A stretch of 63,610 nt of DNA, filler included, from Reticulomyxa filosa (Eukaryota; Protista; Foraminifera), in the NCBI GenBank assembly GCA_000512085.1. It is 8 parts of 8 records of this genome, joined end to end, with 100 filler letters (N's around TTAATTAATTAA, not from the genome) between each part and the next. Parts side by side here need not be neighbours in the genome. Positions count along the whole stretch, not along the records: positions 1 to 21,641 come from ASPP01010108.1; 7 more parts are not named here. One strand, given 5' to 3'. Shown in pieces: positions 1 to 21,641 of the stretch. The first letter of the stretch is position 1. The number at the start of each line of letters is the position of its first letter. The notes under the pieces are model-generated. The model saw only the letters and a program-made list of their open reading frames with translations, made no database searches and was not told the origin of the DNA. The position numbers and the translations under genes were made by a program.

Positions 1-630
1 TAAAATTTTTGTTAGAAACACAAAAAGTACATATTTTAGGTTTGGCTAATTTTCTTTTGTATCAACTGTACCACTTTTCAATGCAAACATATTGCTTTTG
101 TTCGGTTGAATACTGGACATTTGCTCGACTGCTTATGGCTTGCGCAGTTGCTTAGTCATGTCATCGTGACAGCATTTACTGTGTTGTGCTACTATTGCAG
201 ACAAACAGTGCCGATTGTCTAAGGACAGCATGTACATATTATACTATAAGATATTACATTGTCAATTCTGGATGGCCATTGATGGGTTAGCAGACTATAC
301 TATCACACTTGAATTAATCTGAAACAACTAGTCTTGCTCGAAAGAATTATGAAACGAAAAGTGTGTTAGCCTCTCGTTCACTTAAACTAATGTTATTGAA
401 AGTATGTTGCTGTTCAGTAATATGACTCAAATTGTTTAAATTTACACTAACGATTTCGTCAACATCATGTAGATAATGTTGTGGCTTCCACGGGGCTGTT
501 CTCATGATGGTTGCTCCAGTTTGCGACAGGTGACGACGGCACTGGAAAAATATATGGTGAGTGTATTTGTGTCATAATAAGGCTGTCGGTTGGTATGTGT
601 GAATGTGCATTTCTGGAGATTCACTTACAT

Positions 631-839
631 CATAAAATTACACATTATATATGATTTATTTTCTTCATGAAAACAACATTCACGCATATTTTTTTTTTGA
701 AAGATACCCATGAATCTTGTAGTAATAAAAAATTAAATTAAAAATCATATTTAAACCTGCAAGATTCGTTGATATCTCTAAAAAAAATGTTGTTTTTTCA
801 TGAAGAAAACCAATCATATGTATAATGTGTCATTTTATG
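631..839. mobile_element. Fold-back (MITE-like) element, ~210-bp imperfect palindrome
   Basis: Left arm 631-722 (cataaaattacacattatatatgatttattttcttcatgaaaacaacatt...tgaatcttgtag) aligns with the reverse complement of 757-839 (cataaaatgacacattatacatatgattggttttcttcatgaaaaaacaacatt...cgaatcttgcag). The AT-rich loop is ~35 nt. No clear TSD. Confidence 0.6.
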
Positions 840-1020
840 TTTCAATTTTCTTGCATACTGTATAAGCATTTAAATTTCATTTTTTTCTTATGTGCATTAT
901 ACGTTGACTGTAACCTCTCGTGGTGGCTGCCTATCGTTCATGCTTCGAAGTCGCTCCACACGTACGATAGCTTTAGTTAGTTTTTGTATAATTATTTTGT
1001 GTTATCGTTTTCTGCAATAG

Positions 1021-1587
1021 AATATAGCCGTCGTGACAGGTAGCAACTTGGATGTTACACTTTTACTGATGTTCTTTTTTTTCGCTTCCTTTTGCTTGTT
1101 TTTTTTCTTGATAACTCTTATCATCGTCTGGATAAAGAATGTTCATCCAAGGCCACAAGAGCGTAAGCGAGCAAGAAAAAAGCAAGAGAAAGTCCGAAAA
1201 ATCAAAAAAAGCGACGTCACAGACAAAGTCAGAGAAAAAGAAAAACGATGAAGTAAAGATATAAAACGAAGAGAATGAACAGTGCAAAGCAAAATTCGAA
1301 GTCGAAGTTGAAGTAGAATGAATAAGCATTCAGAAAAAGATGAAGACATAGAGAATAATAATCACAAGGATGACGGACAAGATGTAAAGACAAGCCAGGA
1401 CTTTGGAAAGTTTGATCCTCACTGAAGAAGAAGCAAAGCTTGCACATGGACTATGCGTGCATACAGGTGGGTTCCAAACCACTAAAGGACAACCAGGTGA
1501 TGAATCGAGTTCCATGATTGCAACGAGACTCAAAATCCGGACAGCATAGACAATATGAATCGCAGAGGTGTTCAACATGCCCTTAGT
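1021..1587 (+). pseudogene. Degenerate exon of a single-pass membrane protein (TM helix followed by charged tail)
   Basis: After an AG at ~1020 there is a hydrophobic helix (LLLMFFFFASFCLFFFLITLIIVW) and a K/R/E-rich tail. The charged coding-like sequence continues past 1251 in other frames with stops. Confidence 0.3.
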
Positions 1588-2364
1588 GCAATATTACCAG
1601 CCCCAGCCTACTACAACTTTTGCTTTGTCGTGTCATGCTTCCTTTTAATTTTACAACATGGTGGCAACTATAAGAAATACAATTCATTTTAAAAAAATTG
1701 CACTGATCGAATCAAAATCCAGTCTATCAATCTGAAAACAAAAAAAGATATTAAATGCTTTTTGTCATTTGAATGGGCGCTATTTTTTTCCAATGAGCAG
1801 CTTTAATTTCAATGCATTCGTTAAAATTTTTTTGTTTTTGAAATAGTATTCAAAAAATTCTTAATAAAATTTGAAAATACTTTTAAAAAAGTTGACAAAC
1901 AGCTGCCAACTTTTTTCCAAAAATTTACAAAAAGCAAAAGAAATTTTCGGATGTCAAATTTATCCATATGTTTCTTCGTGTCGTTTGATTTGCAATGTTG
2001 ATTGCTTGTAAATAAGAATTAATAAATAGAATGGTATTGAATTACTAAAACAAAATAGGTTGCGTGAAGGAAATGATTTTGTCAGTATTGGTATGACAGT
2101 ATCAGTAACGAAAGTTTATATGTTTTCCATCTGAAACATGCAAATTTTGTTTGTTACAGGTGACCGATGTAAAAGTGCAAATGATAAGTAAGTAAATAAT
2201 CAATATTTGTGTAAAGTTCAGCCAATATTTCATTTCAACAAGGTTGATGCCTTAAAGCATCATAAATTTTGAGCATTACAATTTAACAAACATAACAAAT
2301 TGTTCGATATAGTTCCTTGTGGCACATTTTATGAAAGAAAGCACACTAAAGTAAAAATATTCCT

Positions 2365-4860
2365 TCACATTTTCCGAATTCTCTTTGGTGGAGACTCAAT
2401 ATATTTGTTCCTTGTGTTCATCTCAATGTTGGCAGTATCACCAAATACAATAATATCTTTGCTCGCAGTATACTCATCCTCGTTTACGTTATATTGGGTA
2501 TTTTGCATTGCTGTGAAAGTTCGCTTTTTTCCAACCATTTCATAGCCGCATGTACAAGTATTGTTCGAGTGATCGTTTTTGACACAGACGGAACTCTTGT
2601 TCGTTCGAGATTTCAATGTATGAGAGATAAGATGTGGGTTAAATTTATTGTTGTTTAGATGAAAATCAAATATGTGTGTGTTCTCTTTGATACTCTGATC
2701 TTCGAATGACGGGTTGAATCTATTGGTTTGCATTGAGCCAAGGGTGCTTACTGAAGCTTGTGCGACTGGCTGTTCATTCTTGAAATCGGTTTCTTGTTGT
2801 AGACATTTGGTCAAAATATTATCCAAAATATTAATGTAAAGTTCATACAATGGTAAATCGAAGTAAGACAGTTCGTTAATGAGCTTCAGCATGCAAGTAA
2901 ATTCCATCGGCATGTTCTTGCACAATTCTTGCACGGTTATCATATTTTTATGCATGCCTATGCTCTTGTTTCTCTCCTTTCCCTATATTGAATGACAAAG
3001 AAATCATTAATTTTTTAAAACACATAATTACTTCTTTGCGACTGTAAGAAAATAAAGAAATGAGAGCAAAACACAACAGTGTAGATATCAGCCCATGGAA
3101 GGGTCCCATCGTGCAAATATAGCAACACATACATCAATGATAACAGATCATCTCTTCGTGATAACGATGCTATTGTTTTTTTTTACAGAGAGGCAAAATA
3201 AAAGTTAAGGTTCCGGTACCCTTCTGCGTTTATGTTTTTTGCGATGCAAACAATTGAATACTCTCAAGTTACATACCACATTTTCGATGTGCACGTTTAG
3301 AACAATAGCGTGGAGTTCCAACAACATCACTGTCAATTGATGTGGAGCGCGAATATGGTCTATGCAAACCATCTGCAGTCATAAACGATTCCGACAGTCC
3401 AAAGTCGATCAAATAAACTGCACATCCTTCTTTCATCAACGACTCTAAGTTGCACCCATATCTTAACATTATATTGCGTGGAGCAATATCTTTGTTATCA
3501 CAAACAATACAGAAAAAAGTCATTCACTGCACCAGAATATAAAGAGATTTCCTTTTTTTTTTTGGTTTGTTTAAAAGTTTAAATGAACACTTTTTTTTTT
3601 GTGAGCATGGCTCCAGTGCATGCTCTCCTCAAAAACCTTTCTTGAAAAAGAACATTCAGCAAAAAAAGGTAACTCCTTTTTTTCGATAGAACCACTACCC
3701 TATACGCACTTAGACAATTGAAGCAAAAGCATACCTCTGTGCAAAGCACCGATTTTGTGTATTTGCTGCAAACATTGAATCATATACTTTCCAATGGCAC
3801 AAACATATTTCAATTTCATTCCATTTGGATATTGTTTATCCTTGACACTTTCTAGGCATTCCCCAAGTTTTTCCATAAACTGTTATACCAAGAAAATACA
3901 CTGGATGTGAATAAACAAAAACAGAAACAGAATACAGTGCATTAAAAAAAACATAAAAACAAAAGGATCATAGCATACCATAATATGATGCCATTTTTCG
4001 TTAATTTGAGCTTGCGCAATTTCAAATACTTTGGGAAATTTACGAGACTTCAAGGCGTTCAATTTTTGATACATTGTAAATTCTTTCACCAATTGCTTTG
4101 TCTCTGAACATTCCTATGTAAAACAACGCGTAATTTGTTGAATTGGCTCTGTCACGTCATTAATGAATTGTTGTTATTGTGTGTTGTTTGTGTTTGTTTG
4201 TTGGTCTTGGAAGAGAAAAAAAAGTGGTTGTTGTTGATCGTTTTCGTGTCAACGTGTTTCAAGCTCAACCAATCAAAAACAGAAAAAATATCACTTTGCT
4301 GAGAGCAACGCATGTGTGTTGCTAGCATATTACACTTAACAATTTTGCAAGCAACACGCACATTCGATCTAGGAAAGTTGTGCGCAACCGCTGTATTTTT
4401 TTTTCCCCCAAATCAAACATCACTTATTATGTAACAGCAAACAACAGTTGCTTATTCGACCACATACCGTCGTAAACCATGCCGAAAGCTCTATTTTCAA
4501 TAACACAATGAAGAAACAACATCACAGGAGATGTTTCAAAAAACAAAAAAAAAGGGGGGAAAAAACGTCTTTTCAGAAAAATGATATCCTCATTTCAGAT
4601 GTCAAGACAAAAAAAATTATAAGATTTTCTTTTGTTGCACATTTTTTCAATTACTCCAACTCTTTTGCATTTTTAACACATAAAACATACCCTTCTCCAA
4701 TCACATTGCCAATCGCATAGGAGTGTCCGTTTTGAGTTACGACGCGCTTGTGCGTTAGTATTTCCAGTCGTGGTTTTTTTTTCCGCTCACAGTTATTGAA
4801 TTTTGATCGTGGAATAAAATTTGTTTGTTTGTTGTCAACCACTTCACTAGCAGTAGAGGT
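2365..4860 (-). CDS. Casein kinase 1 superfamily (CK1/TTBK/VRK-like) protein kinase, multi-exon; 5' end uncertain
   Basis: Spliced motifs in order: IGEG|AFGMVY, RVACKIV, MEKLGECL, HR|DIAPRN, VYLIDFGLS, VGTPRYCSKRAH, SRRDDLLSLMY, GTLPW, PMEF. GTxRY, SRRDD and LPW are CK1 hallmarks. GT-AG introns were identified. Confidence 0.85.
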
Positions 4861-7691: not shown

Positions 7692-8323
7692 GAGACACAT
7701 TCTTCACTCAAATTTAACATTCACAAAATTGAAAATATTGTTAAAAGCAGTCAAAAATTGAACAGTCTGCTGGTCTTCGTTGTTTTGTTGTTCATTTTTG
7801 TTGGAGGAGATGAACCAAAAATTGTGAAATTCTACTCCACATATATGCCAGTTTTGGTTTTTTCAAACATTTCACTGGGTGAGGATTGTTTGAATTTGAA
7901 TGTTACTTTGCAACAAAATTTCAAGGGATGTCATAAGTATTTTTCTTTCGTTTTTCATTGCCCTGACAAAATACAATTACCAATGTACTCTCGAGATTAT
8001 TCACCAAATTGTAAACTGAACCTTTTAGAAATTTTTGCAAAATGCTTTCTTTAAGAACTACCAAAAAATCATTCAAATATTTATTATGATTTATTCCGTG
8101 TACACAATTTTTTGATATTTATTGTAACGACTGTTAATACTTCTCAGATTGAAATTTAGTTTTGGCTGAACATCAAAAAAAAAATTATTTGAAGTAATTT
8201 TTTCAGAGGCAGTTCAATCGAGAAGAATATTTGGAACACAGAACGTTTGTTTGCCATCTTATTCGAATAATTTTCTGTACATTCTCAGAACTACCAAAAT
8301 TGGAAAAATGATACAAGCCTCTT

Positions 8324-11300
8324 TTATATGTTTGATCCTACGCGTATTAATGTGTTTCCAGTTTTGCTTTTTGTCGTTTTGTAAGTAGATATAGTATCAC
8401 CAGTTGAAATAGTGCTTCCAGCCATGCCAGAACCGCTGCTAGACATTTGAGATTGCTCTGAAGGTGATGCGACCTTTTTAACTTCTTCAGAGTGGAACCA
8501 TATCATGTAGTACTTTCGCCAAAATAGAAATGCCAACACAGCCTCTAATGCGATCCAAGAAGCAATTCCTCCGAGCACCTGTTTTGCTTCAGGTGGGACA
8601 GATGTAATGACACTAACTGGAACCATAAACAACATTATCAAAGCTAACGTGTAAATAGAAGCTCCCAGCCAAAATGATTCATTAAAGTTTTTGGGAACAT
8701 CTTTTACACCAATGGCCAATCGAACAAGCCATAAAAGGATACCAAGACCACATACCAAACTTACAGTCAAAAAGATATTGTCTAAAGAACAATATTCTTT
8801 GTTGTTGCCATTCGATTCGACCTCCCATTTTGTCCACTTTGTTTGAACCAAGGTCCATGCCAACAAATATGCAAAAACGATTACCGAAGGAGTGACAATG
8901 AAAAACAAAGCCAATCTCGTTGTAGTGAAATTGAATCGTTGAAGAGATTTTCTTGCAGTGTAGAAAATCATATAAATTCTCCAAGTTTTGCCGGTGATAG
9001 GTGCCATAATATAGACAAAGGAGAAATGTAACAACCATGCCAACAATTGACAAGGAACTTTCTGTGGCATAAACGGGAATAAAATAATGGATATACCGAG
9101 CAACAAACATCCTAGCAATATAACGGCCAAAAATGCTGGAGTGGCTCCACGTATAATCGGCGATTGAAGGTAATACCACATGAGGACCGCAGTAATCAAC
9201 ACAGAAACAATTCCAAGAACACCAAATGTGGTATTAATGCCAACGGTCCATGACTGTGGTGCATAAATGCCATTAGAAAATTGTAAAGTGAGAGTTTTGT
9301 TCAATGAATAAGGGGAAGTGAAGACAAGCATTTGCAAATTAAGCTGGACTTTTTTATGCCGGAAACTTTCGCCAGGGACAATAACAAAATCCAATGAGGC
9401 AGTTCCTTGGGAAAAGGTATTTTCATATTTGCCCACCAATTCAACATCTGCATTTAAAATAGATGCAGACAGTACTGTGGTTTGTTCTGTTTGAGTGACA
9501 ATTTGCCCATAAGCATCCAACAAAGTGCCTTGAATTTTGACGTGGCTTTTTTGATTGAAAGTGCTGTGAATATTGGTGCCATAATCCAATTTCAATTTTT
9601 GCGGTCCAGTGCCAGTGTTACTGCCAGATGAAGCAGCATTGTTGGAATATTTGCAATTGGCGTCGTTTGCCCCACAAAGCTTGCAAGCACTGTCATCATT
9701 AACAAATATTGCCCCACCACTGAAAGTCGCGGTATTTCCATTAAAATTTACGCCTTGAAAAGTAAAAGATGGACAAACATCCAGCCAAACACCACCCCCG
9801 TTGTCGGCAGTATTCTGTACAAAGGAGGTATTGGAAAGCTGAATCAAAGGAATATCGCAGCCCAAACCTCCGCCGTTGGTAGCAGTATTTTTAAAAAAAT
9901 TGGAGGCATAATCCGTAATCCAGCCATCAGTAACGTGGACACCTCCTCCTTCCATTTTGGCATTGTTGAATTTGAGTTGATTGGACACCATGCTGATGCT
10001 CCCCAATTGGATATCCAAAGCACCACCATTTACATAGGCCATATTTTTCGAAAACACATTGTTAGACAGGACAGCCAAAGGATTATCACCCCAGACAAAA
10101 AAGAAGAAGGAGCCGAGGAAGTGACGGCAACAGCACCACCACTGTCTGCTATATTGTCATGTATGGAGGAATTGGTAAGCGTGACATTCAGTCCCCACAT
10201 TGCTGCATGCGTGATATGAATCGCTCCGGCCAAAGTCACGGCTGTATTTTCCATAATGGTGCATGCATCCAATGTAATATTACCTCCAGTTATCGTCACA
10301 GCTCCACCTGAGCTACCCGCTACATTGTCCCGGAATGTGATTTTGTGCAAGTGATGAGAGCCACTGGAAATGTCAAGAATTGCGCCTCCTCCCGTCTGCG
10401 AGGCCGTGTTTTCCGAAATCGTGCTATTTCGCATTTCAAATTGACATCCATGGATGTATAGTCCTCCTCCCTGTTGGGCGCTGTTCTGTGTTATATGCGA
10501 CGCGAAAATATGGTTTTGATGCGACTTGCAAACGAAGCTGCCATCGCCGTCATACAAACATCCGCCATCAGACTTTGCCACGTTCGAGCGACAAGTGGTA
10601 TTTATGATATCGTAGTTTCCTTCGGCAATGTAGACGGCGCCGCCTTGCGACGAGGCAAAGTTCTTTTCAAACACGCAATCCCACAAGGATAAGCGTGAGG
10701 AGGGAGAATAATAGCCAATGGCGCCGCCTTGATCCGCCGAGTTGCTGGTAAAAGTGCAGCGACTAAACGTCAAATTCCCAGAGTTGTGAAAAACAGCCCC
10801 TCCCAATTTATCTCCAGTGTTATGTGTAAACACACAATCTTCGACGAAGATAAAATCATCCATTGTGGAGCTCATAGCAGATCCACCAAAAGGTCTAATT
10901 TCAATCATAATAAATCAACGAATGAATATATGGAAAAAAAAAAAAAAAACTCGTATATACACATACATATATGTGTGTATACGTATATATATATATATAA
11001 TAATTACCCGTGGTTATTAATGAATGTGGATTGACTAATAGTAGCATTCGCTGCACTGATGTGAAGACCAACGCCAAAACTGATGGCGGTGTCGGCGATG
11101 CGATTTGTTTTTAAGCAAAGCGTTTTGGACGGTGACGACGCCGGTGGTGACCAGATAGAAGGCTCCAAAGTCGATTCCGAAGGTGTCGACGGCGGTGCTG
11201 TCGTAAATAAAAGCAAAGTCGATGCCAGCGGCGAATATGCAGCCTCCAGGGCCCATGGTGAGATTACACGTCAATGCAGAGATGGTCATGACCTCAACGT

Positions 11301-13878
11301 TAAGGATATATGCACAAGGCGCAATCACAGACGTGGAATTTTGGCATATGAGATTGCTCAACGTGGTCGACCCCGCGAGATTGTTCAAAGTGATATCCCC
11401 TTGGATAGTCTGCGAAGCGATACAACCACTTTGGCCGCCAAAAGTGTTGGTACACGTCAAATTGGTGGTTGACAAAGAAGTGACAAACAAGGAAAGCACG
11501 CAGCCAGACGTATAGCCATTCATATAATCGCAAACGACATTTCGCAGACGCGCGGTGCCGCCGCGATATAAATGGAGTGGAGCATACGAAAATTCGGATA
11601 TGGAAGAGGAAGTGGCGACAAGGCCATTGATTTGTGCAAGTTTGAAGAACATAAGCTTTGCACAAGAAGTGCTGTTGCCAAAGGCGTCGTCGCACGTGAT
11701 ATTGTTAAGTGTGACGGTGTTAATGACATAAGAGAAGAAGCAGCCCGAATAAACAGGAGAAGAGGTTGATTCGCATCGCAAATCGGTGATTGTGATTAAG
11801 GAAATGAGCAAAGGAAAGGATGTCGTAAACACGCACGCGCCAAGATCCCCGACGGAATTGGAGCACAAGACACGTGAAATGCTGATGGAAGTCACGGTGT
11901 CGACATAGATACATCCCGACTGTCCGCTGATCGAATCAACGCAATGCACATTATCGGTTAGCAGTTGCACGCCATTGTTGACGACAATGGGAGAATTGGA
12001 CATGTGCACGTCGAAAAACACGACCTTGTCGATGGCCATCGCTCCAAAGTTTTGGACAAACAGCGCGGCAGCGGCGACAGAGTCAACGATGTCCCATTGA
12101 TTCACCACAATCGAGGCGGCATTGATTAAGCAAAACACAGACTCGGTGCAATTGCCAATGGCAACAGGAGAGAGGAAGAACGAATCGACTTCGATATTGG
12201 ACAGCTGTATGGCCCAAGGACTGTTTGTCGGCACCGGATCGCCTTGCAAAATGAGGAATGGATTACCTGCATTGCGAATGATAATGTGATCCAATATCAA
12301 CACATTACTTCGTCCGACGGTAGATACGATATACAAAGGATGCGTCGTGATCGAACGTGCATCAAAGTCGATATATTGTAAAATAATGGTCAAATTGATT
12401 TCCGAAACGGAGAAGGAGGACAGATCGGCCGATACAATTTCGCCGTAGGTCGACGACACGGTCTGATGATCCAACATGACAATGATCAGATCTTTGAGTT
12501 CGATAAAAATATCCATGCTTTTGTCCACAACGTCGAGCTGCACCAACACGCTGGCGTTACCAAAGATGGTACACGTTGGATTGATACACCCCAATTGGAC
12601 ATGGGCGTCACGACCTACAAACCAATGATATCGCTGATTCGACATATCCCAGTTCGTCGTGAAATTGATATACATGTGATCATTCTTTGTTGACAGCCAA
12701 ATGGCTTTTTCGATGGCATCTTCCAAGCTTGTCGTTTGATATGCCACAGACGCCAAGCTGCCATTATTCATGCCAACGACAGTGCTATTGTACACCAAGA
12801 TGGTATCGACCGAGGTCATGTCGAATACCAATTGCCGCCATTGCACGGAGGACATATCCAGATACTGCATATGTCGTGACTGGTGGTCATTATTCGAGGT
12901 GCCTCCAATGAGCCACAACACATTCTTGCGAGCAATACCTGCAAATTGTGCCAAAGGCTCGTTCAGACGTGGTCCAAATCCGAGCACGATTTTGCTGTTC
13001 AAATCCAACACCTCACTGTTTATCACGCTGATACCACACTTCTGATCGCTTGTCGCTTGCAAACATCCGCCGACGACAAGCACGCGTTTCGATTCATCCG
13101 AATCCTGTAATACAAATGCGCCACTGGCCATTCGCGCAATTGCCAAATCTCCTCTTTCTTCCAATGTCTTGTTCACATATGATATCGACCATATCGTCGA
13201 AAGTGGCTCTCCTGTCACATAGTTTTGTCCTCCAAATAGCCACAGCTCCTCTGTCATCTCTGCCCATACACACGACCCGTAATATGCATATGATATGCCG
13301 TCTGTTTCGTTTGTTATGTTCGTCCACTTTTCCGTCGTCACGTCATATTCCAAACTTTGGGAATAGTAATCACCATTGCTTCCTTTGTCGCCAAGAATAT
13401 TCACAAAGATTCTTGTCTTTTCGTCCGAACATATCGTCACTCCGACTATATCCACGTTTGCCATTCCTGCTTCTTTCTTTTGCTTTGTCTTTGTTGTCAG
13501 GTTAAATATTTCCCATGTCAGATTTCTCATATTACTTCCCACGCTCAGATAATATATACTGTCCTCAATCACTGCATTCTTGTGCTCCAGCAGCGTGTAC
13601 TGCGACTCGTTCGCTGGACTACCTTGCACTACTGTCGTCTGTCCGCTTTTACCTGCTGACACTGTTGTTATGTCCAGCTCCACGTAGTATGTATTTGCAC
13701 TTCCACTTTGTCCTGATTCTCCACCTATCGCCACTATTTTTTCCGTCAAAGAGTTGTAACCGACCATTGCTCCATACAATGTCCAGGGTAAATCAGCGGT
13801 GGTCAAAGAGAATTTATTGACATGATCTTCACAAAAGACCACACTCACCAACGCGATTATCAACACCAGCAGAAACAT
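8324..13878 (-). CDS. Giant class C-type GPCR: signal peptide, Kelch propeller, beta-helix (Pmp-like) ectodomain, 7tm_3 domain; one intron and two apparent single-base frameshifts
   Basis: Signal peptide MFLLVLIIALVSVVFC. Kelch GG motifs: IVAIGG, LWLFGG, VLVVGG, LWLIGG. Repeats of FxxNxA..GGA(I/V). Class C 7TM motifs: PIIRGATPAFL, KTWRIYMIF, DVPKNFNESFWLG. Intron 11007-10895 (GT..AG) joins NNHG|PFGG. Frame changes at ~11105 and ~10090 fall in homopolymers. Confidence 0.85.
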
Positions 13879-14225: not shown

Positions 14226-15014
14226 TCAAAGAAACAATGGCTGCTTGAAAATATCTTCAATGATACACAAAAACATGTTTGCAGTAGACAAAGCAACAAC
14301 AGTTTGAATATTGTCAAATTTTTGTGCCTTCAAAATATCGTTCCGCAATTGTGCAAGTTCCCTGCCAAAAATTCTCAAATCGCTGATCCAATCGGATAAG
14401 AAAGGCTGCTCAACAAGTAACAAAATTGCATAGAGCCAAGCACACGTGTAAGAAGAAAGTTTTTGTTCAGAAATATCAGAAGAGCACTCTTGCATCAAAG
14501 CTGTAGAGATATGTATTAATGTGACAGTATCCAGCTTCAATACAATGGACAGCTTGGGCAAGACTTTTTGTGACTCAATTAATTCCAGCCATTGGTCTTG
14601 CTTTGTTTTTTTATTGTTATCTTTCAATTCATCGAATGGCATATCTTTCCATTTGTTCAACGACCCCTTGTTTTTTAGGTACAACAATTGTTCTCTCAAT
14701 CCTTTAAAATGAACAACAAATTTGGCCTTCCATTCTAAACTTATTGTACCGTTCACTGAGGCGTTTTCATACGCTGGTGCAACACTTTTTGGCTTTGATG
14801 CCACTGCGATGGTTGTAGGTGCACGAATTATATCGGGCAATGCTTTTGCCTCTTTTCGCACACGTGCTAAGTACTCTTGAGCATTTGTTGCTGGCTGGTT
14901 CATGTCTACATTTGAGAGATCTACGGTTTCATCCACTGGTAAGGCTTGTGGCATCAAGCTATTGCTTGAATCAGCGTCATCACCACTATCTTCAGCTGTG
15001 GTTTGAATATCCAT
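14226..15014 (-). CDS. GEMIN2: Gem-associated protein 2 (SMN-interacting protein SIP1)
   Basis: PATNAQEYLARVRKEA, WLYAILLLVEQP...ISDLR and ANMFLCIIEDIFKQ match Gemin2 motifs. Likely ATG at 15014 within ORF 14226..15068. Confidence 0.85.
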   Translation of the reverse strand: MDIQTTAEDSGDDADSSNSLMPQALPVDETVDLSNVDMNQPATNAQEYLARVRKEAKALPDIIRAPTTIAVASKPKSVAPAYENASVNGTISLEWKAKFVVHFKGLREQLLYLKNKGSLNKWKDMPFDELKDNNKKTKQDQWLELIESQKVLPKLSIVLKLDTVTLIHISTALMQECSSDISEQKLSSYTCAWLYAILLLVEQPFLSDWISDLRIFGRELAQLRNDILKAQKFDNIQTVVALSTANMFLCIIEDIFKQPLFL

Positions 15015-15544
15015 AATCGATAAATTTGAAATTTTTTTTTTTCCTTCCCTTATGGGTCTAGCAATCACTAAGATTTTTTAATAGATTGATCAAATTAATA
15101 TTGTACTTTATTAATTTTTGCAATTTTTTTTTGTAAGCTACTTTTGTAGTGTTTAGTTTTTTTTAATTTTTAAAAGGTTTTTGCTATTTGTTTTATTTTT
15201 TGTTGTTAGAATGTATCAGCTTACCATGAAAACTTTGATGTGCTTTTTTTAAGTGTTATTGACGTTTTGAATTTTTATAATTTTTGGCAATTGCATTTTT
15301 GTGTTAATGAATTTTTTAATTTGAATGTGCTTTGTCTATTACTATTTTATTTTTTATTACTTTGATTTTATATTTTTTTATTCTTTTAAAAAAATCAAAC
15401 TTTAAATATTTTCTTAACTACAATTACTAACGTAAAAATAAGTGAAAAAAGAAAAAAAGAAAAATTGAACGTAAAAATAATTCAAATTTCATAAAATAAA
15501 CTAACAAAAATTTTAAAACAAAAAAACTGAATTTGTACTAATGT

Positions 15545-15720
15545 TATAGAAAATAATTAAAAATTTGTATTGACAAAAAATTGTAGAAAAACGCATTTTG
15601 AAACACTTGAAGACTCGTATATTTTAAAAAGATTTTGCAAAAATGTTGATTTTTGACTTAGAAAATGATTCATAAAGTGCCATTTTAGTGTGTAATTACT
15701 TTTGTCACTACATGTATTAC
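15545..15720 (+). repeat. Dispersed AT-rich repeat, copy A
   Basis: Shares acaaaaaattgtagaaaa...aaaagattttg(c/a)aaaaatgttgatttttgacttagaaaat...ttcataa(a/g)gtg(c/t)cattttagtgt with 51247-51435. Confidence 0.75.
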
Positions 15721-16333
15721 AACGCAATCGAATTTGAGAAGTGAAATATCAATTCATTGCGTATTTGGATGCGGCTACAAACTGATGTACGCTATATACA
15801 TATCACATTGTAGATATTGGCTAAATACATTAAATTACTCTGAATTGAATAATATTTATGAAAAAAACAATTATGAAAATCTTTTGATTTGCTTTTTCTA
15901 ATTTAATAGATATATCAAATCATCTTCGCTTGTTATATTTTCAAACGTATAATCTGCAACTAAATAAGTTTACTTACTAGTTGTACTTCTTGTATCGAGT
16001 ACAGTGCATTCATAACTGAAAATAATCCTTCTATAATTTTTCATCAACAATTACTTGCATTTAGCTTAGTTTTATCTGAGCGAAGGTTTGATGATTACTT
16101 ATTTTTAACAATAGTGCATGTGTTAAGACTTTTATTTCGCTAGCCTAAGTAAGCCTATTTTGTTAAGAGGATCTCATCAAATGATGAAAAGGATTCGGTA
16201 AGAGTCTTTATTTTGCTTTTTTTCCTTTTCTTTTTTCTTGTTTTGTAAATTTAAAGAAGCGGAATATTATAGATCCAGACAATTTTGAAAGAATGTTGGA
16301 CAAACATAAGCAAGAAAAAAGCAAATTTTGACA

Positions 16334-18071
16334 TTATTGTATATCGGAGACATATTGAATTCCCTCATATTGTGCAATAACCCACGATATTTTTTTAATT
16401 TGTTCTTCAGTCATAACAGAAGGATAAAATGGCTCACTTTTGGTATCTTGCAAAATTTTGTCAATTTTTTCTTTGTGAGTTTCCCACTCGAAATGTTGAT
16501 CATCCCAGCCAATGGACTTGACTATCTTATCCAACATGTCGACACCTCCGTTGCAGATATCAGTATCATATCTAACCAAACAAGAGAAGCTGCTTTTTGC
16601 GACATCGCTTCGATTATCTTTTCCTTCCTTGTCGTTATGTTTTTCCGTTTCGAAAGATAGTCGCTTGTGCTTTCCGTTCAAAAAGAACATGGCATAAATC
16701 AAATTGGACAAAACCTCGCACGCAACATCAACAATGTAATCCTGAGAAAAGTTGTCCAAATAGATGCTCCGACTATGAAATTCGCTGTGGTTATTGGCAC
16801 ATTCTTGCAAAGCAGTAAAGTACATGGACGGGTCGCAATAATAGCGATACATATCATCCACTCCAAACAAGCTCAAAAAATAAGGGATTGCTTTGTCATG
16901 AAACTTGTTTATTACACACTGCACCGACTTCCATAGCGATTGATATACAAATAAGTGTTTCACACCAGGCAGGGACGGCTTTAAAAACTCATTCCAAAAG
17001 TATATGTCATGACAACGCATGCGCCAAATCAAGTAAGGTCTTTTTTCATATTTGCATTGATTCAACTCATTATACGTCCACAAAAAGTATTGATGCAATA
17101 ATAATAATAATTTGCGTTTCATTTGTTTTAATTCATCATTTTTTTCCAAACGCTTCAACTAGTTAAAAAGGGTTCACACATGAAAAAAAATCTTTTGCAC
17201 AACAGAAAGTGAACTTTGAACAAAAAGCTACCTGGACAATGTAGAACTGTAAAGCAGCCCAAGGCGAGTGATTAGAAATGAATTGAATCGACTTGCTCGA
17301 AAACTGAAACATGTGGCCCAGATAATCACTGACACCACCCATGAAAGGATCGCTGTCAAATAAAAGCAAGACTTTTTCAAATACTGGCTTCGATGACTTG
17401 GCCGTGTGATCACTGTCGGCAGTGCACTTGCTAACAATTGCTGGCCACAAATCGGCGGACACGCGATAGATAGTTGTTTCCTTTTGTTGAAATTTCTGCT
17501 GAAACAATGCCATTGTGTAATTATATTTACACTCTTTCAATTGATCATTCCATTGCTTTTTGTCACATTCCAACAGATAAATGGACAAATCGTTTGGGTC
17601 AATGCAATAGCCCATTAACACTTTTCCCTCTTTTTTGATTCGCTTTTCGTATCTCTCTATAAACTCTTCTTTCGACACTACTTCGCAAGGACGGCTCAAA
17701 TTCGGTATGTCTAGGTCTTGCGGTAATGCAAATGAAAACTCTCCGCAACTTGACTTTGGCTCATTGCTTGATTGGATTATCGATCTTAATTTCTCAATCC
17801 AACCCAAATTCGTTCGCCGTTTTACCTTGTAGATTGATATTCCTTCACTTGTCTTCTCATTTGTTTTGCCATCCTTTTGAACAAAATTGTAACGTACTGC
17901 CAATGACTTGTTGCGGTGTATCCCAACCAACACAACTATCAAAAATGTCGAGAGCAACGCGCCAAAGATTGGCCAAGAGAACCGCGAGATTAAGATATAC
18001 AGAAACAATGCCTCCAACATCAATAAAGGCAAGTGACGATATATTGAGATTTGTTTCAATGTGCATACCAT
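16334..18071 (-). CDS. N-terminally anchored protein with a divergent sulfotransferase-like fold, two exons
   Basis: ORFs 17163..18071 and 16334..17158 join in frame via VQ|gtagct...aactag|LKRL. N-terminal TM helices. GYCID, PGVKHLFVYQS and LVRYD resemble sulfotransferase-family segments, but no RxGST motif is present. Confidence 0.5.
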
Positions 18072-20770: not shown

Positions 20771-21641
20771 ATGGGAAATTGTTGTAAAACAGTCCCAGAA
20801 GATTTAGTAGATTTTTTGAGATGTACACCTTTTTTCAAGATAGATGAAGCTTTGTTAGAAGATCTGGGAAGAAGTTTTGAAAGACAGTATTTTCCGGCAA
20901 ATAAAGAATTATGGACGGAAGGAATGGAAGATATAAAATTTACGATAATAGCATCAGGAGAAGTGAGATTAGTACATAAATTGGAGAATAAGCGTTCAAT
21001 AATAATACAAAAAGAGAAAGGTCAATGTATAGGATATGAAGCATTAAATAATAAATTTTTAAAAGTAAATTATTCAGCAACAGCAATAGTAGATACATAT
21101 TGTTATCAACTTGAATTTGATGCATTATCACGTTTTTGGAGATCACATTCATTAGCTCAAGAAATATTTCGTAAATGTCATGTAATACCATTAGATTCAT
21201 ATTTACGTAAAATGAATATATTTAAAAGTTTAAATGATGAACAATCAGTATTATTAGCAAATATGTTTAAATGGAAAATATTAAAACAAGGAGAAACATT
21301 ATTTGAAGAAGGAGAATATGGTAATACATTATATTTAGTAGCAATAGGATGTGTACAAGTAATGGCTAAAGTAACAAAAGAAAATGAAGATGCAGAAATG
21401 GTAGCATTTGAATTAGAGAAAGCAAATTCAACAACTAATGAAAATGAAAATGAAAATGAAAATAAGAATGAGAATGGTGGAGATGAAATTCTTACTACAC
21501 AAATAGCAGGAGTAGGAGTTAAAATAAAGCAATCAACAGATATTACAGATATAAGACAACGTAATAATACAGAAACAACAAATACAAATGAAATAAATAT
21601 GAATAAGCAATTATCAACAACAACAACAACAACAACAACAA
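20771..21641 (+). CDS. Cyclic-nucleotide-binding domain protein with dual-acylation N-terminus; 3' truncated at linker
   Basis: Starts MGNCCK. CNB1: FLRCTPFF...LWTEG...IIASGEV. CNB2: LRKMNIFKSL...GETLFEEGEYGNTLYLVAIGCVQV. Confidence 0.75.

Follow-up and report, generated by a model that had tools for sequence, protein, structure and literature searches.

GPCRs (G-protein-coupled receptors) of class C are understood almost entirely through the closure of the flytrap in the animal receptors. The Venus-flytrap ectodomain with its NCD3G domain defines the mGluR/CaSR/T1R subgroup, not the class C family as a whole. Outside the animals, glutamate-family receptors are described in two published surveys as having diverse lineage-specific ectodomains, the module of ANF and NCD3G being a metazoan innovation (PMC3971589; PMC12716839). 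The gene considered here occupies positions 13878-8324 on the minus strand of the window, a term that stands for the entire stretch of DNA analysed (63,610 nucleotides, including the filler between its joined parts). It belongs to Reticulomyxa filosa, a naked, amoeboid freshwater foraminiferan (Rhizaria), and lies on contig ASPP01010108.1 of assembly GCA_000512085.1.

In the predicted product the conserved class C core is situated under a stiff solenoid, 15-17 nm in length. The reading favoured here, with a probability of about 0.6, is that of a single two-exon gene for a class C receptor of ~1,810 residues with a non-canonical ectodomain, the two breaks in its frame being most likely homopolymer errors. 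The first-pass annotation had proposed such a protein by joining three minus-strand open reading frames (ORFs) through one GT-AG intron (11007-10895) and two one-base corrections. All three ORFs are present where it placed them, and comparison with paralogs backs the single gene, the intron and both one-base breaks.

Reading frames, intron and paralogous loci

The features of the locus are the following.

8324-13878, minus strand: whole gene of ~1,810 codons, made up of exons 13878-11008 and 10894-8324; the assembly interrupts its frame at two points
13878-11035, minus strand: ORF A, 947 amino acids
10908-10030, minus strand: ORF B, 292 amino acids
10078-8324, minus strand: ORF C, 584 amino acids
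13878-11035, minus strand: deposited hypothetical protein of 947 amino acids (GenBank annotation)
10908-8324, minus strand: deposited 'adhesin-like protein' (automatic name) of 847 amino acids (GenBank annotation)
13816-13878, minus strand: start codon and N-terminal signal peptide (MFLLVLIIALVSVVFC followed by EDH), by hydropathy
12829-13815, minus strand: Kelch-type β-propeller, ORF A residues ~22-350 (Pfam; ESM Atlas model)
11107-12591, minus strand: exon-1 part of the rod, right-handed β-helix with Cys-pair repeats, residues ~430-924 (structure prediction)
11104-11112, minus strand: frame break 1, an A5-C-A3 run that has one extra base when compared with the paralogs (tblastn)
11008-11105, minus strand: last part of exon 1, read in the shifted frame (NRIADTAISFGVGLHISAANATISQSTFINNHG) and homologous to paralog AINYGVGAHMEGVYAQISRCVFTNNHG (tblastn E 2e-4)
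10895-11007, minus strand: intron, 113 nucleotides, GT-AG, phase 2, position conserved in three paralogous loci
9644-10893, minus strand: second part of the rod, in exon 2, with 14 Chlam_PMP repeats of canonical form (FxxN...GGA, one every ~26 residues; Pfam, motif count, AlphaFold)
10097-10102, minus strand: frame break 2, a T6 run that lacks one base when compared with the paralogs (tblastn; P0003 and L001 continuous)
9269-9601, minus strand: membrane-proximal β-sandwich of ~110 residues, ORF C residues ~160-270 (AlphaFold confidence mostly >90)
8468-9253, minus strand: class C (7tm_3) seven-helix domain with a β-hairpin in extracellular loop 2, ORF C residues 276-537 (Pfam, Foldseek, Atlas)
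8324-8467, minus strand: Ser/Thr-rich cytoplasmic tail, predicted to be disordered (AlphaFold confidence <50, ORF C residues 540-584), and stop codon

Two paralogous loci of R. filosa carry the evidence for joining these pieces. The first, L001 (ASPP01021912.1), encodes RFI_25487 (921 residues, with 36% identity to ORF A) and, after it on the same strand, RFI_25488 (593 residues, with a 7tm_3 domain). Its first ORF (389-3187) is unbroken through the site of the window's first frame break and ends with AINYGVGAHMEGVYAQISRCVFTNNHG exactly at a GT. After a low-complexity intron, which falls at the same codon as that of the window, the sequence restarts with PFGGAAVSSSMQESILLEDCSF, matching PFGGSAMSSTMDDFIFVEDCVF in the window, and then reads uninterrupted through the site of the second break (SSADPSYFEWQTHPMLLISSSELVNN). 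Between 3160 and 4215 the frame of L001 itself appears to be disturbed by one base at three sites, namely at the donor cacGGtaca (GG against GGG in the window), around 3745-3760 and within an A8 run at about 4206-4213; none of these sites is broken in the window. The contig of the second locus, L003 (ASPP01008539.1), starts within the same intron and continues with an unbroken ORF of 837 residues (RFI_11702, or P0003), equivalent to ORF B plus ORF C. The assembly probably broke at this contig start because the intron repeat lies there. In each of the three loci, exon 2 carries the conserved residues PFGG upstream of its first Met.

The intron contains a (TA)n/(CA)n microsatellite and a long poly-T tract in each of the three loci (window 10895-11007; L001:3169-3267; L003:1-107).

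Within R. filosa, the module composed of the Pmp-type helix, the β-sandwich and the 7tm_3 domain is 50-60% identical between copies. The seven-transmembrane (7TM) domain is the best conserved part (63% identity, with a proportion of nonsynonymous differences, pN, of 0.24), and in all parts the ratio of nonsynonymous to synonymous differences (pN/pS) lies well under 1 (dN/dS 0.11-0.31, with dS saturated). Another class C fragment of this genome, P0013 (ETO31328.1, deposited as 'metabotropic glutamate receptor 2 3, partial'), is situated on a contig of 1,573 bp and shares 32% identity with ORF C across the 7TM domain.

All searches and models were made exon by exon, or frame piece by frame piece, and the subject of the local tblastn was the window less positions 10949-11011 (low-complexity intron). 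Residues 3-867 of L001 exon 1 align with 13875-11149, and residues 884-914 align with 11105-11013 in a shifted frame (E 2e-4). Similarly, residues 1-254 of P0003 align with 10854-10093 and residues 252-797 with 10102-8468, the two matches abutting each other in different frames. The frame of ORF A closes with 23 junk residues (KSHRRHRHQFWRWSSHQCSECYY), whereas the neighbouring frame gives NRIADTAISFGVGLHISAANATISQSTFINNH up to the donor. The frame of ORF C is open upstream of its own first start codon and reads FFVWGDNPLAVLSNNVFSKN. Both breaks anticipated at ~11105 and ~10090 were thus found, and the tblastn matches refine their positions to 11112-11104 and 10102-10097. GT-AG mini-introns in place of the frame breaks were also considered; when all frame-restoring options were enumerated, each of them removed residues that are conserved in the paralogs.

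The deposited annotation assigns the region 13878-8324 to two adjoining genes, the contig encoding the ORF A product as the first of them. As the first-pass annotation had warned, the architecture is masked by this split into a 947-residue 'hypothetical protein' and an 847-residue 'adhesin-like protein'. Taken literally, the two models describe a secreted Kelch/β-helix protein next to a Pmp-repeat class C receptor, in agreement with a stop codon proper to ORF A at 11035 and an ATG proper to ORF B at 10908. Such an arrangement is nevertheless highly improbable. The 23 C-terminal residues of ORF A are out of frame, and the homology of the shifted frame to the paralog reaches the GT donor; the ATG at 10908, which is the start of the 847-residue model, sits within the conserved intron; PFGG precedes the first Met in L003; and a signal peptide is present in exon 1 only, whereas ~550 residues of exon 2, with N-glycosylation sequons, must be extracellular. 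For these reasons, and because the order and the junction recur in L001, with the intron kept in position and phase across three loci, the three ORFs are read as one spliced gene. Judged by paralog conservation, exon 1 is most likely spliced to exon 2.

The 847-residue model crosses the second frame break by means of a 41-nucleotide GT-AG 'intron' (10033-9993), which is the sole option of that length. As a result, it contains 21 out-of-frame residues (LSGVIILWLSCLTMCFRKIWP) and loses residues that the paralogs conserve, a further point against two genes. This intron is most likely an artefact, and the deposited annotation most likely divides one gene wrongly.

The same annotation treats an unrelated gene in a similar way. 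Two deposited models at L001:9739-12966 (minus strand) each hold part of one PP2A B56 regulatory-subunit domain, the upstream ORF covering Pfam profile positions 2-131 and the downstream ORF those from 131-233 onward. The split point has a GAG/GTAAGT donor, so the annotation cut one gene at an intron, and this precedent also speaks against two genes in the window. The R. filosa annotation thus appears to cut receptor genes of this kind and at least one B56 gene at introns and to bridge frame breaks with false mini-introns; therefore, surveys of domain architecture based on that proteome would miss or misreport these receptors.

The frame breaks in the window are probably one-base homopolymer errors of the draft assembly. 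This is favoured because all five breaks, in the window and L001 together, are single bases in or beside homopolymers, and because the sites differ between copies, the paralogs being continuous at the breaks of the window and the window being intact at those of L001. The ~13 kb of coding sequence in the paralogs is free of in-frame nonsense codons, and pN/pS is far below 1 throughout; both observations argue in the same direction. So does the poor quality of the draft, a very fragmented assembly of 101.9 Mb in 50,809 contigs with an N50 of 3,609 bp (PMC10245619, Table 1), in which truncated gene models have previously been rejoined by others (PMC5784254).

That the breaks are real mutations is unlikely, but not greatly so. 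In that case the architecture would be real, but this copy, one of several in its family, would be a pseudogene of recent origin; L001 would have lost its function in the same way, leaving RFI_11702 or copies not seen here as the functional genes. At least three R. filosa paralogs exist and would provide the necessary redundancy. The splice sites of the window are intact, however, none of the copies contains a stop codon of the substitution type, every break is a single base in or beside a homopolymer, and the assembly is known to be poor (PMC10245619, PMC5784254). Recent inactivation of this copy is accordingly regarded as improbable, if far from negligible.

Several observations weigh against the reading of one intact gene for a Kelch-capped receptor. 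The density of breaks is high (two in 5.5 kb of the window, and apparently three in L001), which also fits decaying paralogs, and two of the break sites in L001 are runs of merely 2-3 bases. The pN/pS values mirror old divergence and are unable to exclude recent decay. A search of sequencing runs for words of the gene returned only two synthetic-metagenome runs (share 0.05) and no RNA run. The AlphaFold model of ORF A, calculated with a two-sequence alignment, is poor, having a mean predicted local distance difference test score (pLDDT) of 47.7. Finally, searches for Kelch-capped relatives with ORF A and with a profile of ORF A and its paralog found only ORF A itself and RFI_25487 among the matches listed, which is a weak negative since the searches were length-filtered and capped at 8000 candidates.

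Predicted architecture of the receptor

The proposed domain order, from a signal peptide through Kelch propeller, β-helix, β-rich linker and class C 7TM domain to a Ser-rich tail, is supported by Pfam, by the structural models and by fold searches. At the N-terminus of exon 1 the signal peptide alone is strongly hydrophobic, and two later, marginal hydrophobic matches (residues 679-700 and 851-869) fall inside the predicted β-helix.

The Kelch assignment of the N-terminal segment is borne out by Pfam, just above the thresholds: Kelch_4 scores 21.9 against a cut-off of 21.6 and Kelch_1 20.9 against 20.1. PF24681 matches ORF A with an E-value of 3.5e-10 and 40 bits, under its cut-off of 50. In the ESM Atlas model (whole-protein pLDDT 0.69), the nearest folds to residues 22-400 are those of ten Kelch families, with template-modelling scores (TM-scores) of 0.65-0.72 over 281-325 aligned residues. 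The AlphaFold model calculated in this work has a pLDDT of ~30 in the Kelch part, and a profile search of the PDB with the Kelch region returned no match.

The rod that follows consists of two kinds of helix. Residues 646-880 of exon 1 contain a ladder of eight Cys pairs, spaced 9-11 residues apart (mostly 10) and repeating every 26-27 residues with one gap. Residues 400-924 have no Pfam match, and BLASTP of this helix against the Pmp helix of exon 2 is not significant. In the ESM Atlas model the folds closest to the exon-1 rod are Chlam_PMP, Beta_helix and NosD helices (TM-scores 0.61-0.75), and the rod is classified, by structure prediction alone, as a Cys-ladder variant of the β-helix. The pLDDT of the exon-1 AlphaFold model is mostly 55-85 over residues 500-920, with dips to ~31-44 near residues 701-710 and 731-760. 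Foldseek with this model gave no match at E<=0.001, and the model was not used.

The canonical form of the repeat is found in exon 2 only. Chlam_PMP matches ORF B with 65.7 bits (cut-off 20.6) and ORF C weakly, and the FxxN / GGA(I/L/V) repeats, ~26 residues each, number 9 + 5. The Pmp-like repeats that had been claimed for the whole long helix therefore hold for exon 2, with its 14 repeats, and not for the exon-1 rod, which Pfam does not match. The AlphaFold model of ORF C, built with a 31-sequence alignment, is of good quality (mean pLDDT 87.4, predicted TM-score 0.70), and residues 8-145 form β-helix turns with pLDDT >90. The two parts of the rod add up to ~35 predicted turns, from which a length of the order of 15-17 nm is inferred.

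Between the rod and the membrane, the first-pass annotation had placed a short β-rich linker. The segment is predicted, with good confidence, as a compact β-sandwich of ~110 residues, which stops ~6 residues ahead of the first transmembrane helix (TM1). The favoured reading is an ectodomain with a Kelch propeller at its tip, a right-handed β-helix of ~930 residues, and the β-sandwich positioned directly on TM1. The expectation that a flytrap had been replaced is upheld, with Pfam detecting neither a Venus-flytrap nor a cysteine-rich domain and the propeller, helix and sandwich being there instead. None of the ANF_receptor, NCD3G, GAIN/GPS, 7tm_2 and autotransporter domains matched any piece of the protein in Pfam (E<=0.1).

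As anticipated, ORF C matches 7tm_3 (PF00003), with 116.6 bits against a cut-off of 33.5 and an E-value of 2e-33, over profile positions 12-249 of 251. In a sequence search of the PDB, residues 275-552 were aligned to the whole 7TM domain of mGlu2 (E 1.3e-14). The best 50 Foldseek matches of the ORF C model are all class C receptors (mGlu, GABA-B, GPR158, CaSR and GPR156); the 7TM fold superimposes onto that of mGlu1 (4or2_A) with a root-mean-square deviation of 2.4 Å over 262 columns, and the Atlas search agrees.

The class C motifs noticed in the DNA are in place, KTWRIY at ORF C residues 364-369 and PKNFNES at residues 462-468. C343 in TM3 and C430 in extracellular loop 2 (ECL2) are invariant in the 31-sequence alignment. 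K364 (of KTWRI), N466 and E467 (of FNES) and K522 are nearly invariant (at least 90% of the 31 rows). The two cysteines, K364, N466 and E467 align with the motifs of mGlu2. K364 and E467 correspond to K3.50/E6.35, the ionic lock of class C receptors. The sequence of TM7 is FWRKYY in place of the usual PKxY, so that the Lys and Tyr are kept and the Pro is replaced. A prediction of the complex of two copies of ORF C residues 150-545 gave a score of 0.04, which provides no answer and is not evidence either way.

Relatives and possible function

When ORF C was used as the query of an exhaustive HMMER search, 5,572 proteins were retrieved at E<=0.001, among them at least 17 representatives that match across the helix, the sandwich and the 7TM domain. 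The same module is found in the transcript-derived proteins P0011, P0015 and P0009 (864-1,512 residues) of another foraminiferan, Bolivina argentea, and in metagenome proteins such as P0031 and P0068; the metagenome proteins reach 2,128 residues. P0018, a complete transcriptome ORF of 2,338 residues, has an N-terminal Kringle domain followed by Chlam_PMP (87.7 bits) and 7tm_3, that is, a different tip on the same rod. In the filasterean Pigoraptor (P. chileana / P. vietnamica, EukProt), P0029 and P0151 are 1,300-1,651 residues long. P0029 contains Chlam_PMP (51.5 bits) and 7tm_3 (179 bits), and P0151 has the β-sandwich and 7TM domain in common with ORF C (BLASTP 9e-22). Identity of the module to these relatives outside R. 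filosa is 24-31%.

As judged from these sequences, the helix-sandwich-7tm_3 module is recurrent in protists, occurs as a single ORF in transcripts, and is not limited to Rhizaria because the Pigoraptor proteins carry it. The notion of a unique chimera, which the first-pass annotation conveyed, was therefore overstated. The Kelch cap and the Cys-ladder helix were found in two R. filosa loci only; BLASTP of ORF A against Bolivina P0011 is not significant.

Pigoraptor is among the taxa sampled in PMC12716839. The main texts of PMC3971589 and PMC12716839 do not mention Kelch or Pmp/β-helix ectodomains, and a literature search found no paper naming Chlam_PMP and 7tm_3 together. 'PbH1 parallel β-helix repeats' are listed among the domains in figures of a survey of dictyostelid GPCRs (PMC10445921). 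The R. filosa receptor, a class C GPCR with a solenoid ectodomain that the split annotation hides, belongs to a wider protist family which is undescribed as far as searched.

The rod is a continuous solenoid and the sandwich ends very close to TM1, which is why the ectodomain is probably a stiff lever on the 7TM bundle. A ligand, surface contact or mechanical load at the propeller or the rod could be passed by the rod and β-sandwich to the bundle, which, as a monomer or a dimer, would shift into its active state. With the class C signalling residues kept, the bundle would couple to heterotrimeric G proteins, and the receptor could sense contact or particles at the surface of the cell or on its reticulopodia. 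The role of a contact, substrate or prey sensor is an inference from the predicted structure.

Pmp-type β-helices are adhesins in Chlamydia. The protein might accordingly be mainly an adhesin, its rod and propeller attaching the cell to substrate or prey and its 7TM domain serving chiefly as an anchor with little or no G-protein signalling. The automatic name given by the depositor and the WRKYY motif of TM7, where PKxY is usual, would be consistent with this. On the other hand, a single helix would suffice as an anchor, the 7TM domain is instead the part best conserved among paralogs (63% identity), and the residues of the signalling face (K364, E467 and FNES) are nearly invariant across distant relatives. 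This conservation favours signalling over a mainly adhesive role, which appears quite unlikely.

If the family is functional, a very different type of ectodomain is able to drive the class C 7TM core, and the family would provide candidates for surface, prey or particle sensing in giant amoeboid cells, with relatives in other foraminifera and in a close relative of the animals (Filasterea). A broader proposal is tentative and, taken as a whole, rather doubtful. In it, 'solenoid' class C receptors would be ancient and widespread in protists (Foraminifera, Filasterea and uncultured protists), with a rod and sandwich replacing the flytrap and cysteine-rich domain. Surface contact would activate them by lever action, force or lateral re-packing of the rods and not by closure of a clamshell, and the lectin-like Kelch tip would have been added in R. 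filosa for the recognition of particles or prey on the reticulopodia.

Neighbouring sequence and comparison with known systems

Elsewhere on the contig, positions 15001-16000 of the window, between a SIP1-like gene and the next gene model, have a G+C content of 0.22, compared to 0.33-0.48 in the rest of the contig. Two ORFs of 274 and 302 residues, 4 nucleotides apart, occupy 16334-18071 (minus strand) and are deposited as one model of 537 residues with an intron of ~73 nucleotides. Short tandem repeats are found at the end of the contig, (AATGAA)x6.7 at 21437-21476 and (CAA)x9 at 21615-21641, and the contig stops within the CAA array.

The R. filosa receptor resembles the metazoan class C GPCRs (mGluR, CaSR, GABA-B and T1R) in its homologous 7TM domain, recognized by PF00003, by the sequence match to mGlu2 and by the fold match to mGlu1, in the cysteines joining TM3 and ECL2, in the KTxRI and FNE motifs, in the ECL2 hairpin, and in having a large ectodomain close to TM1. 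It differs from them in lacking ANF_receptor and NCD3G, in the predicted propeller, helix and sandwich found in their place, and in the WRKYY motif of TM7. GPR158/GPR179 (mGlyR), which are among both the fold and the sequence matches, also combine a class C 7TM domain with a non-flytrap ectodomain and are thus a precedent for replacement of the clamshell. Their ectodomain, however, is composed of Cache and EGF-like domains (PMC12716839) and not of a solenoid rod, and they are confined to metazoans.

The rod has its counterpart in the chlamydial Pmp and other Chlam_PMP surface proteins, with which it shares the FxxN / GGA(I/L/V) β-helix and the geometry of an extracellular rod. Unlike them, the R. 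filosa protein has no autotransporter β-barrel, is encoded by a eukaryotic gene with a spliceosomal intron, and is predicted to be anchored by a 7TM domain and capped by a Kelch propeller. The likeness to adhesion GPCRs (class B2) is one of concept, a very long adhesion-type ectodomain on a 7TM domain with possible mechanical activation; these receptors belong to the 7tm_2 family and have GAIN/GPS, neither of which was matched by Pfam in the R. filosa protein. A further group consists of the protist proteins that combine a β-helix with 7tm_3 (RFI_25487/25488, RFI_11702, and those of Bolivina, Pigoraptor and the metagenomes). They share the module of Pmp helix, β-sandwich and 7tm_3, whereas the tips of the others vary, as exemplified by the Kringle domain of P0018.

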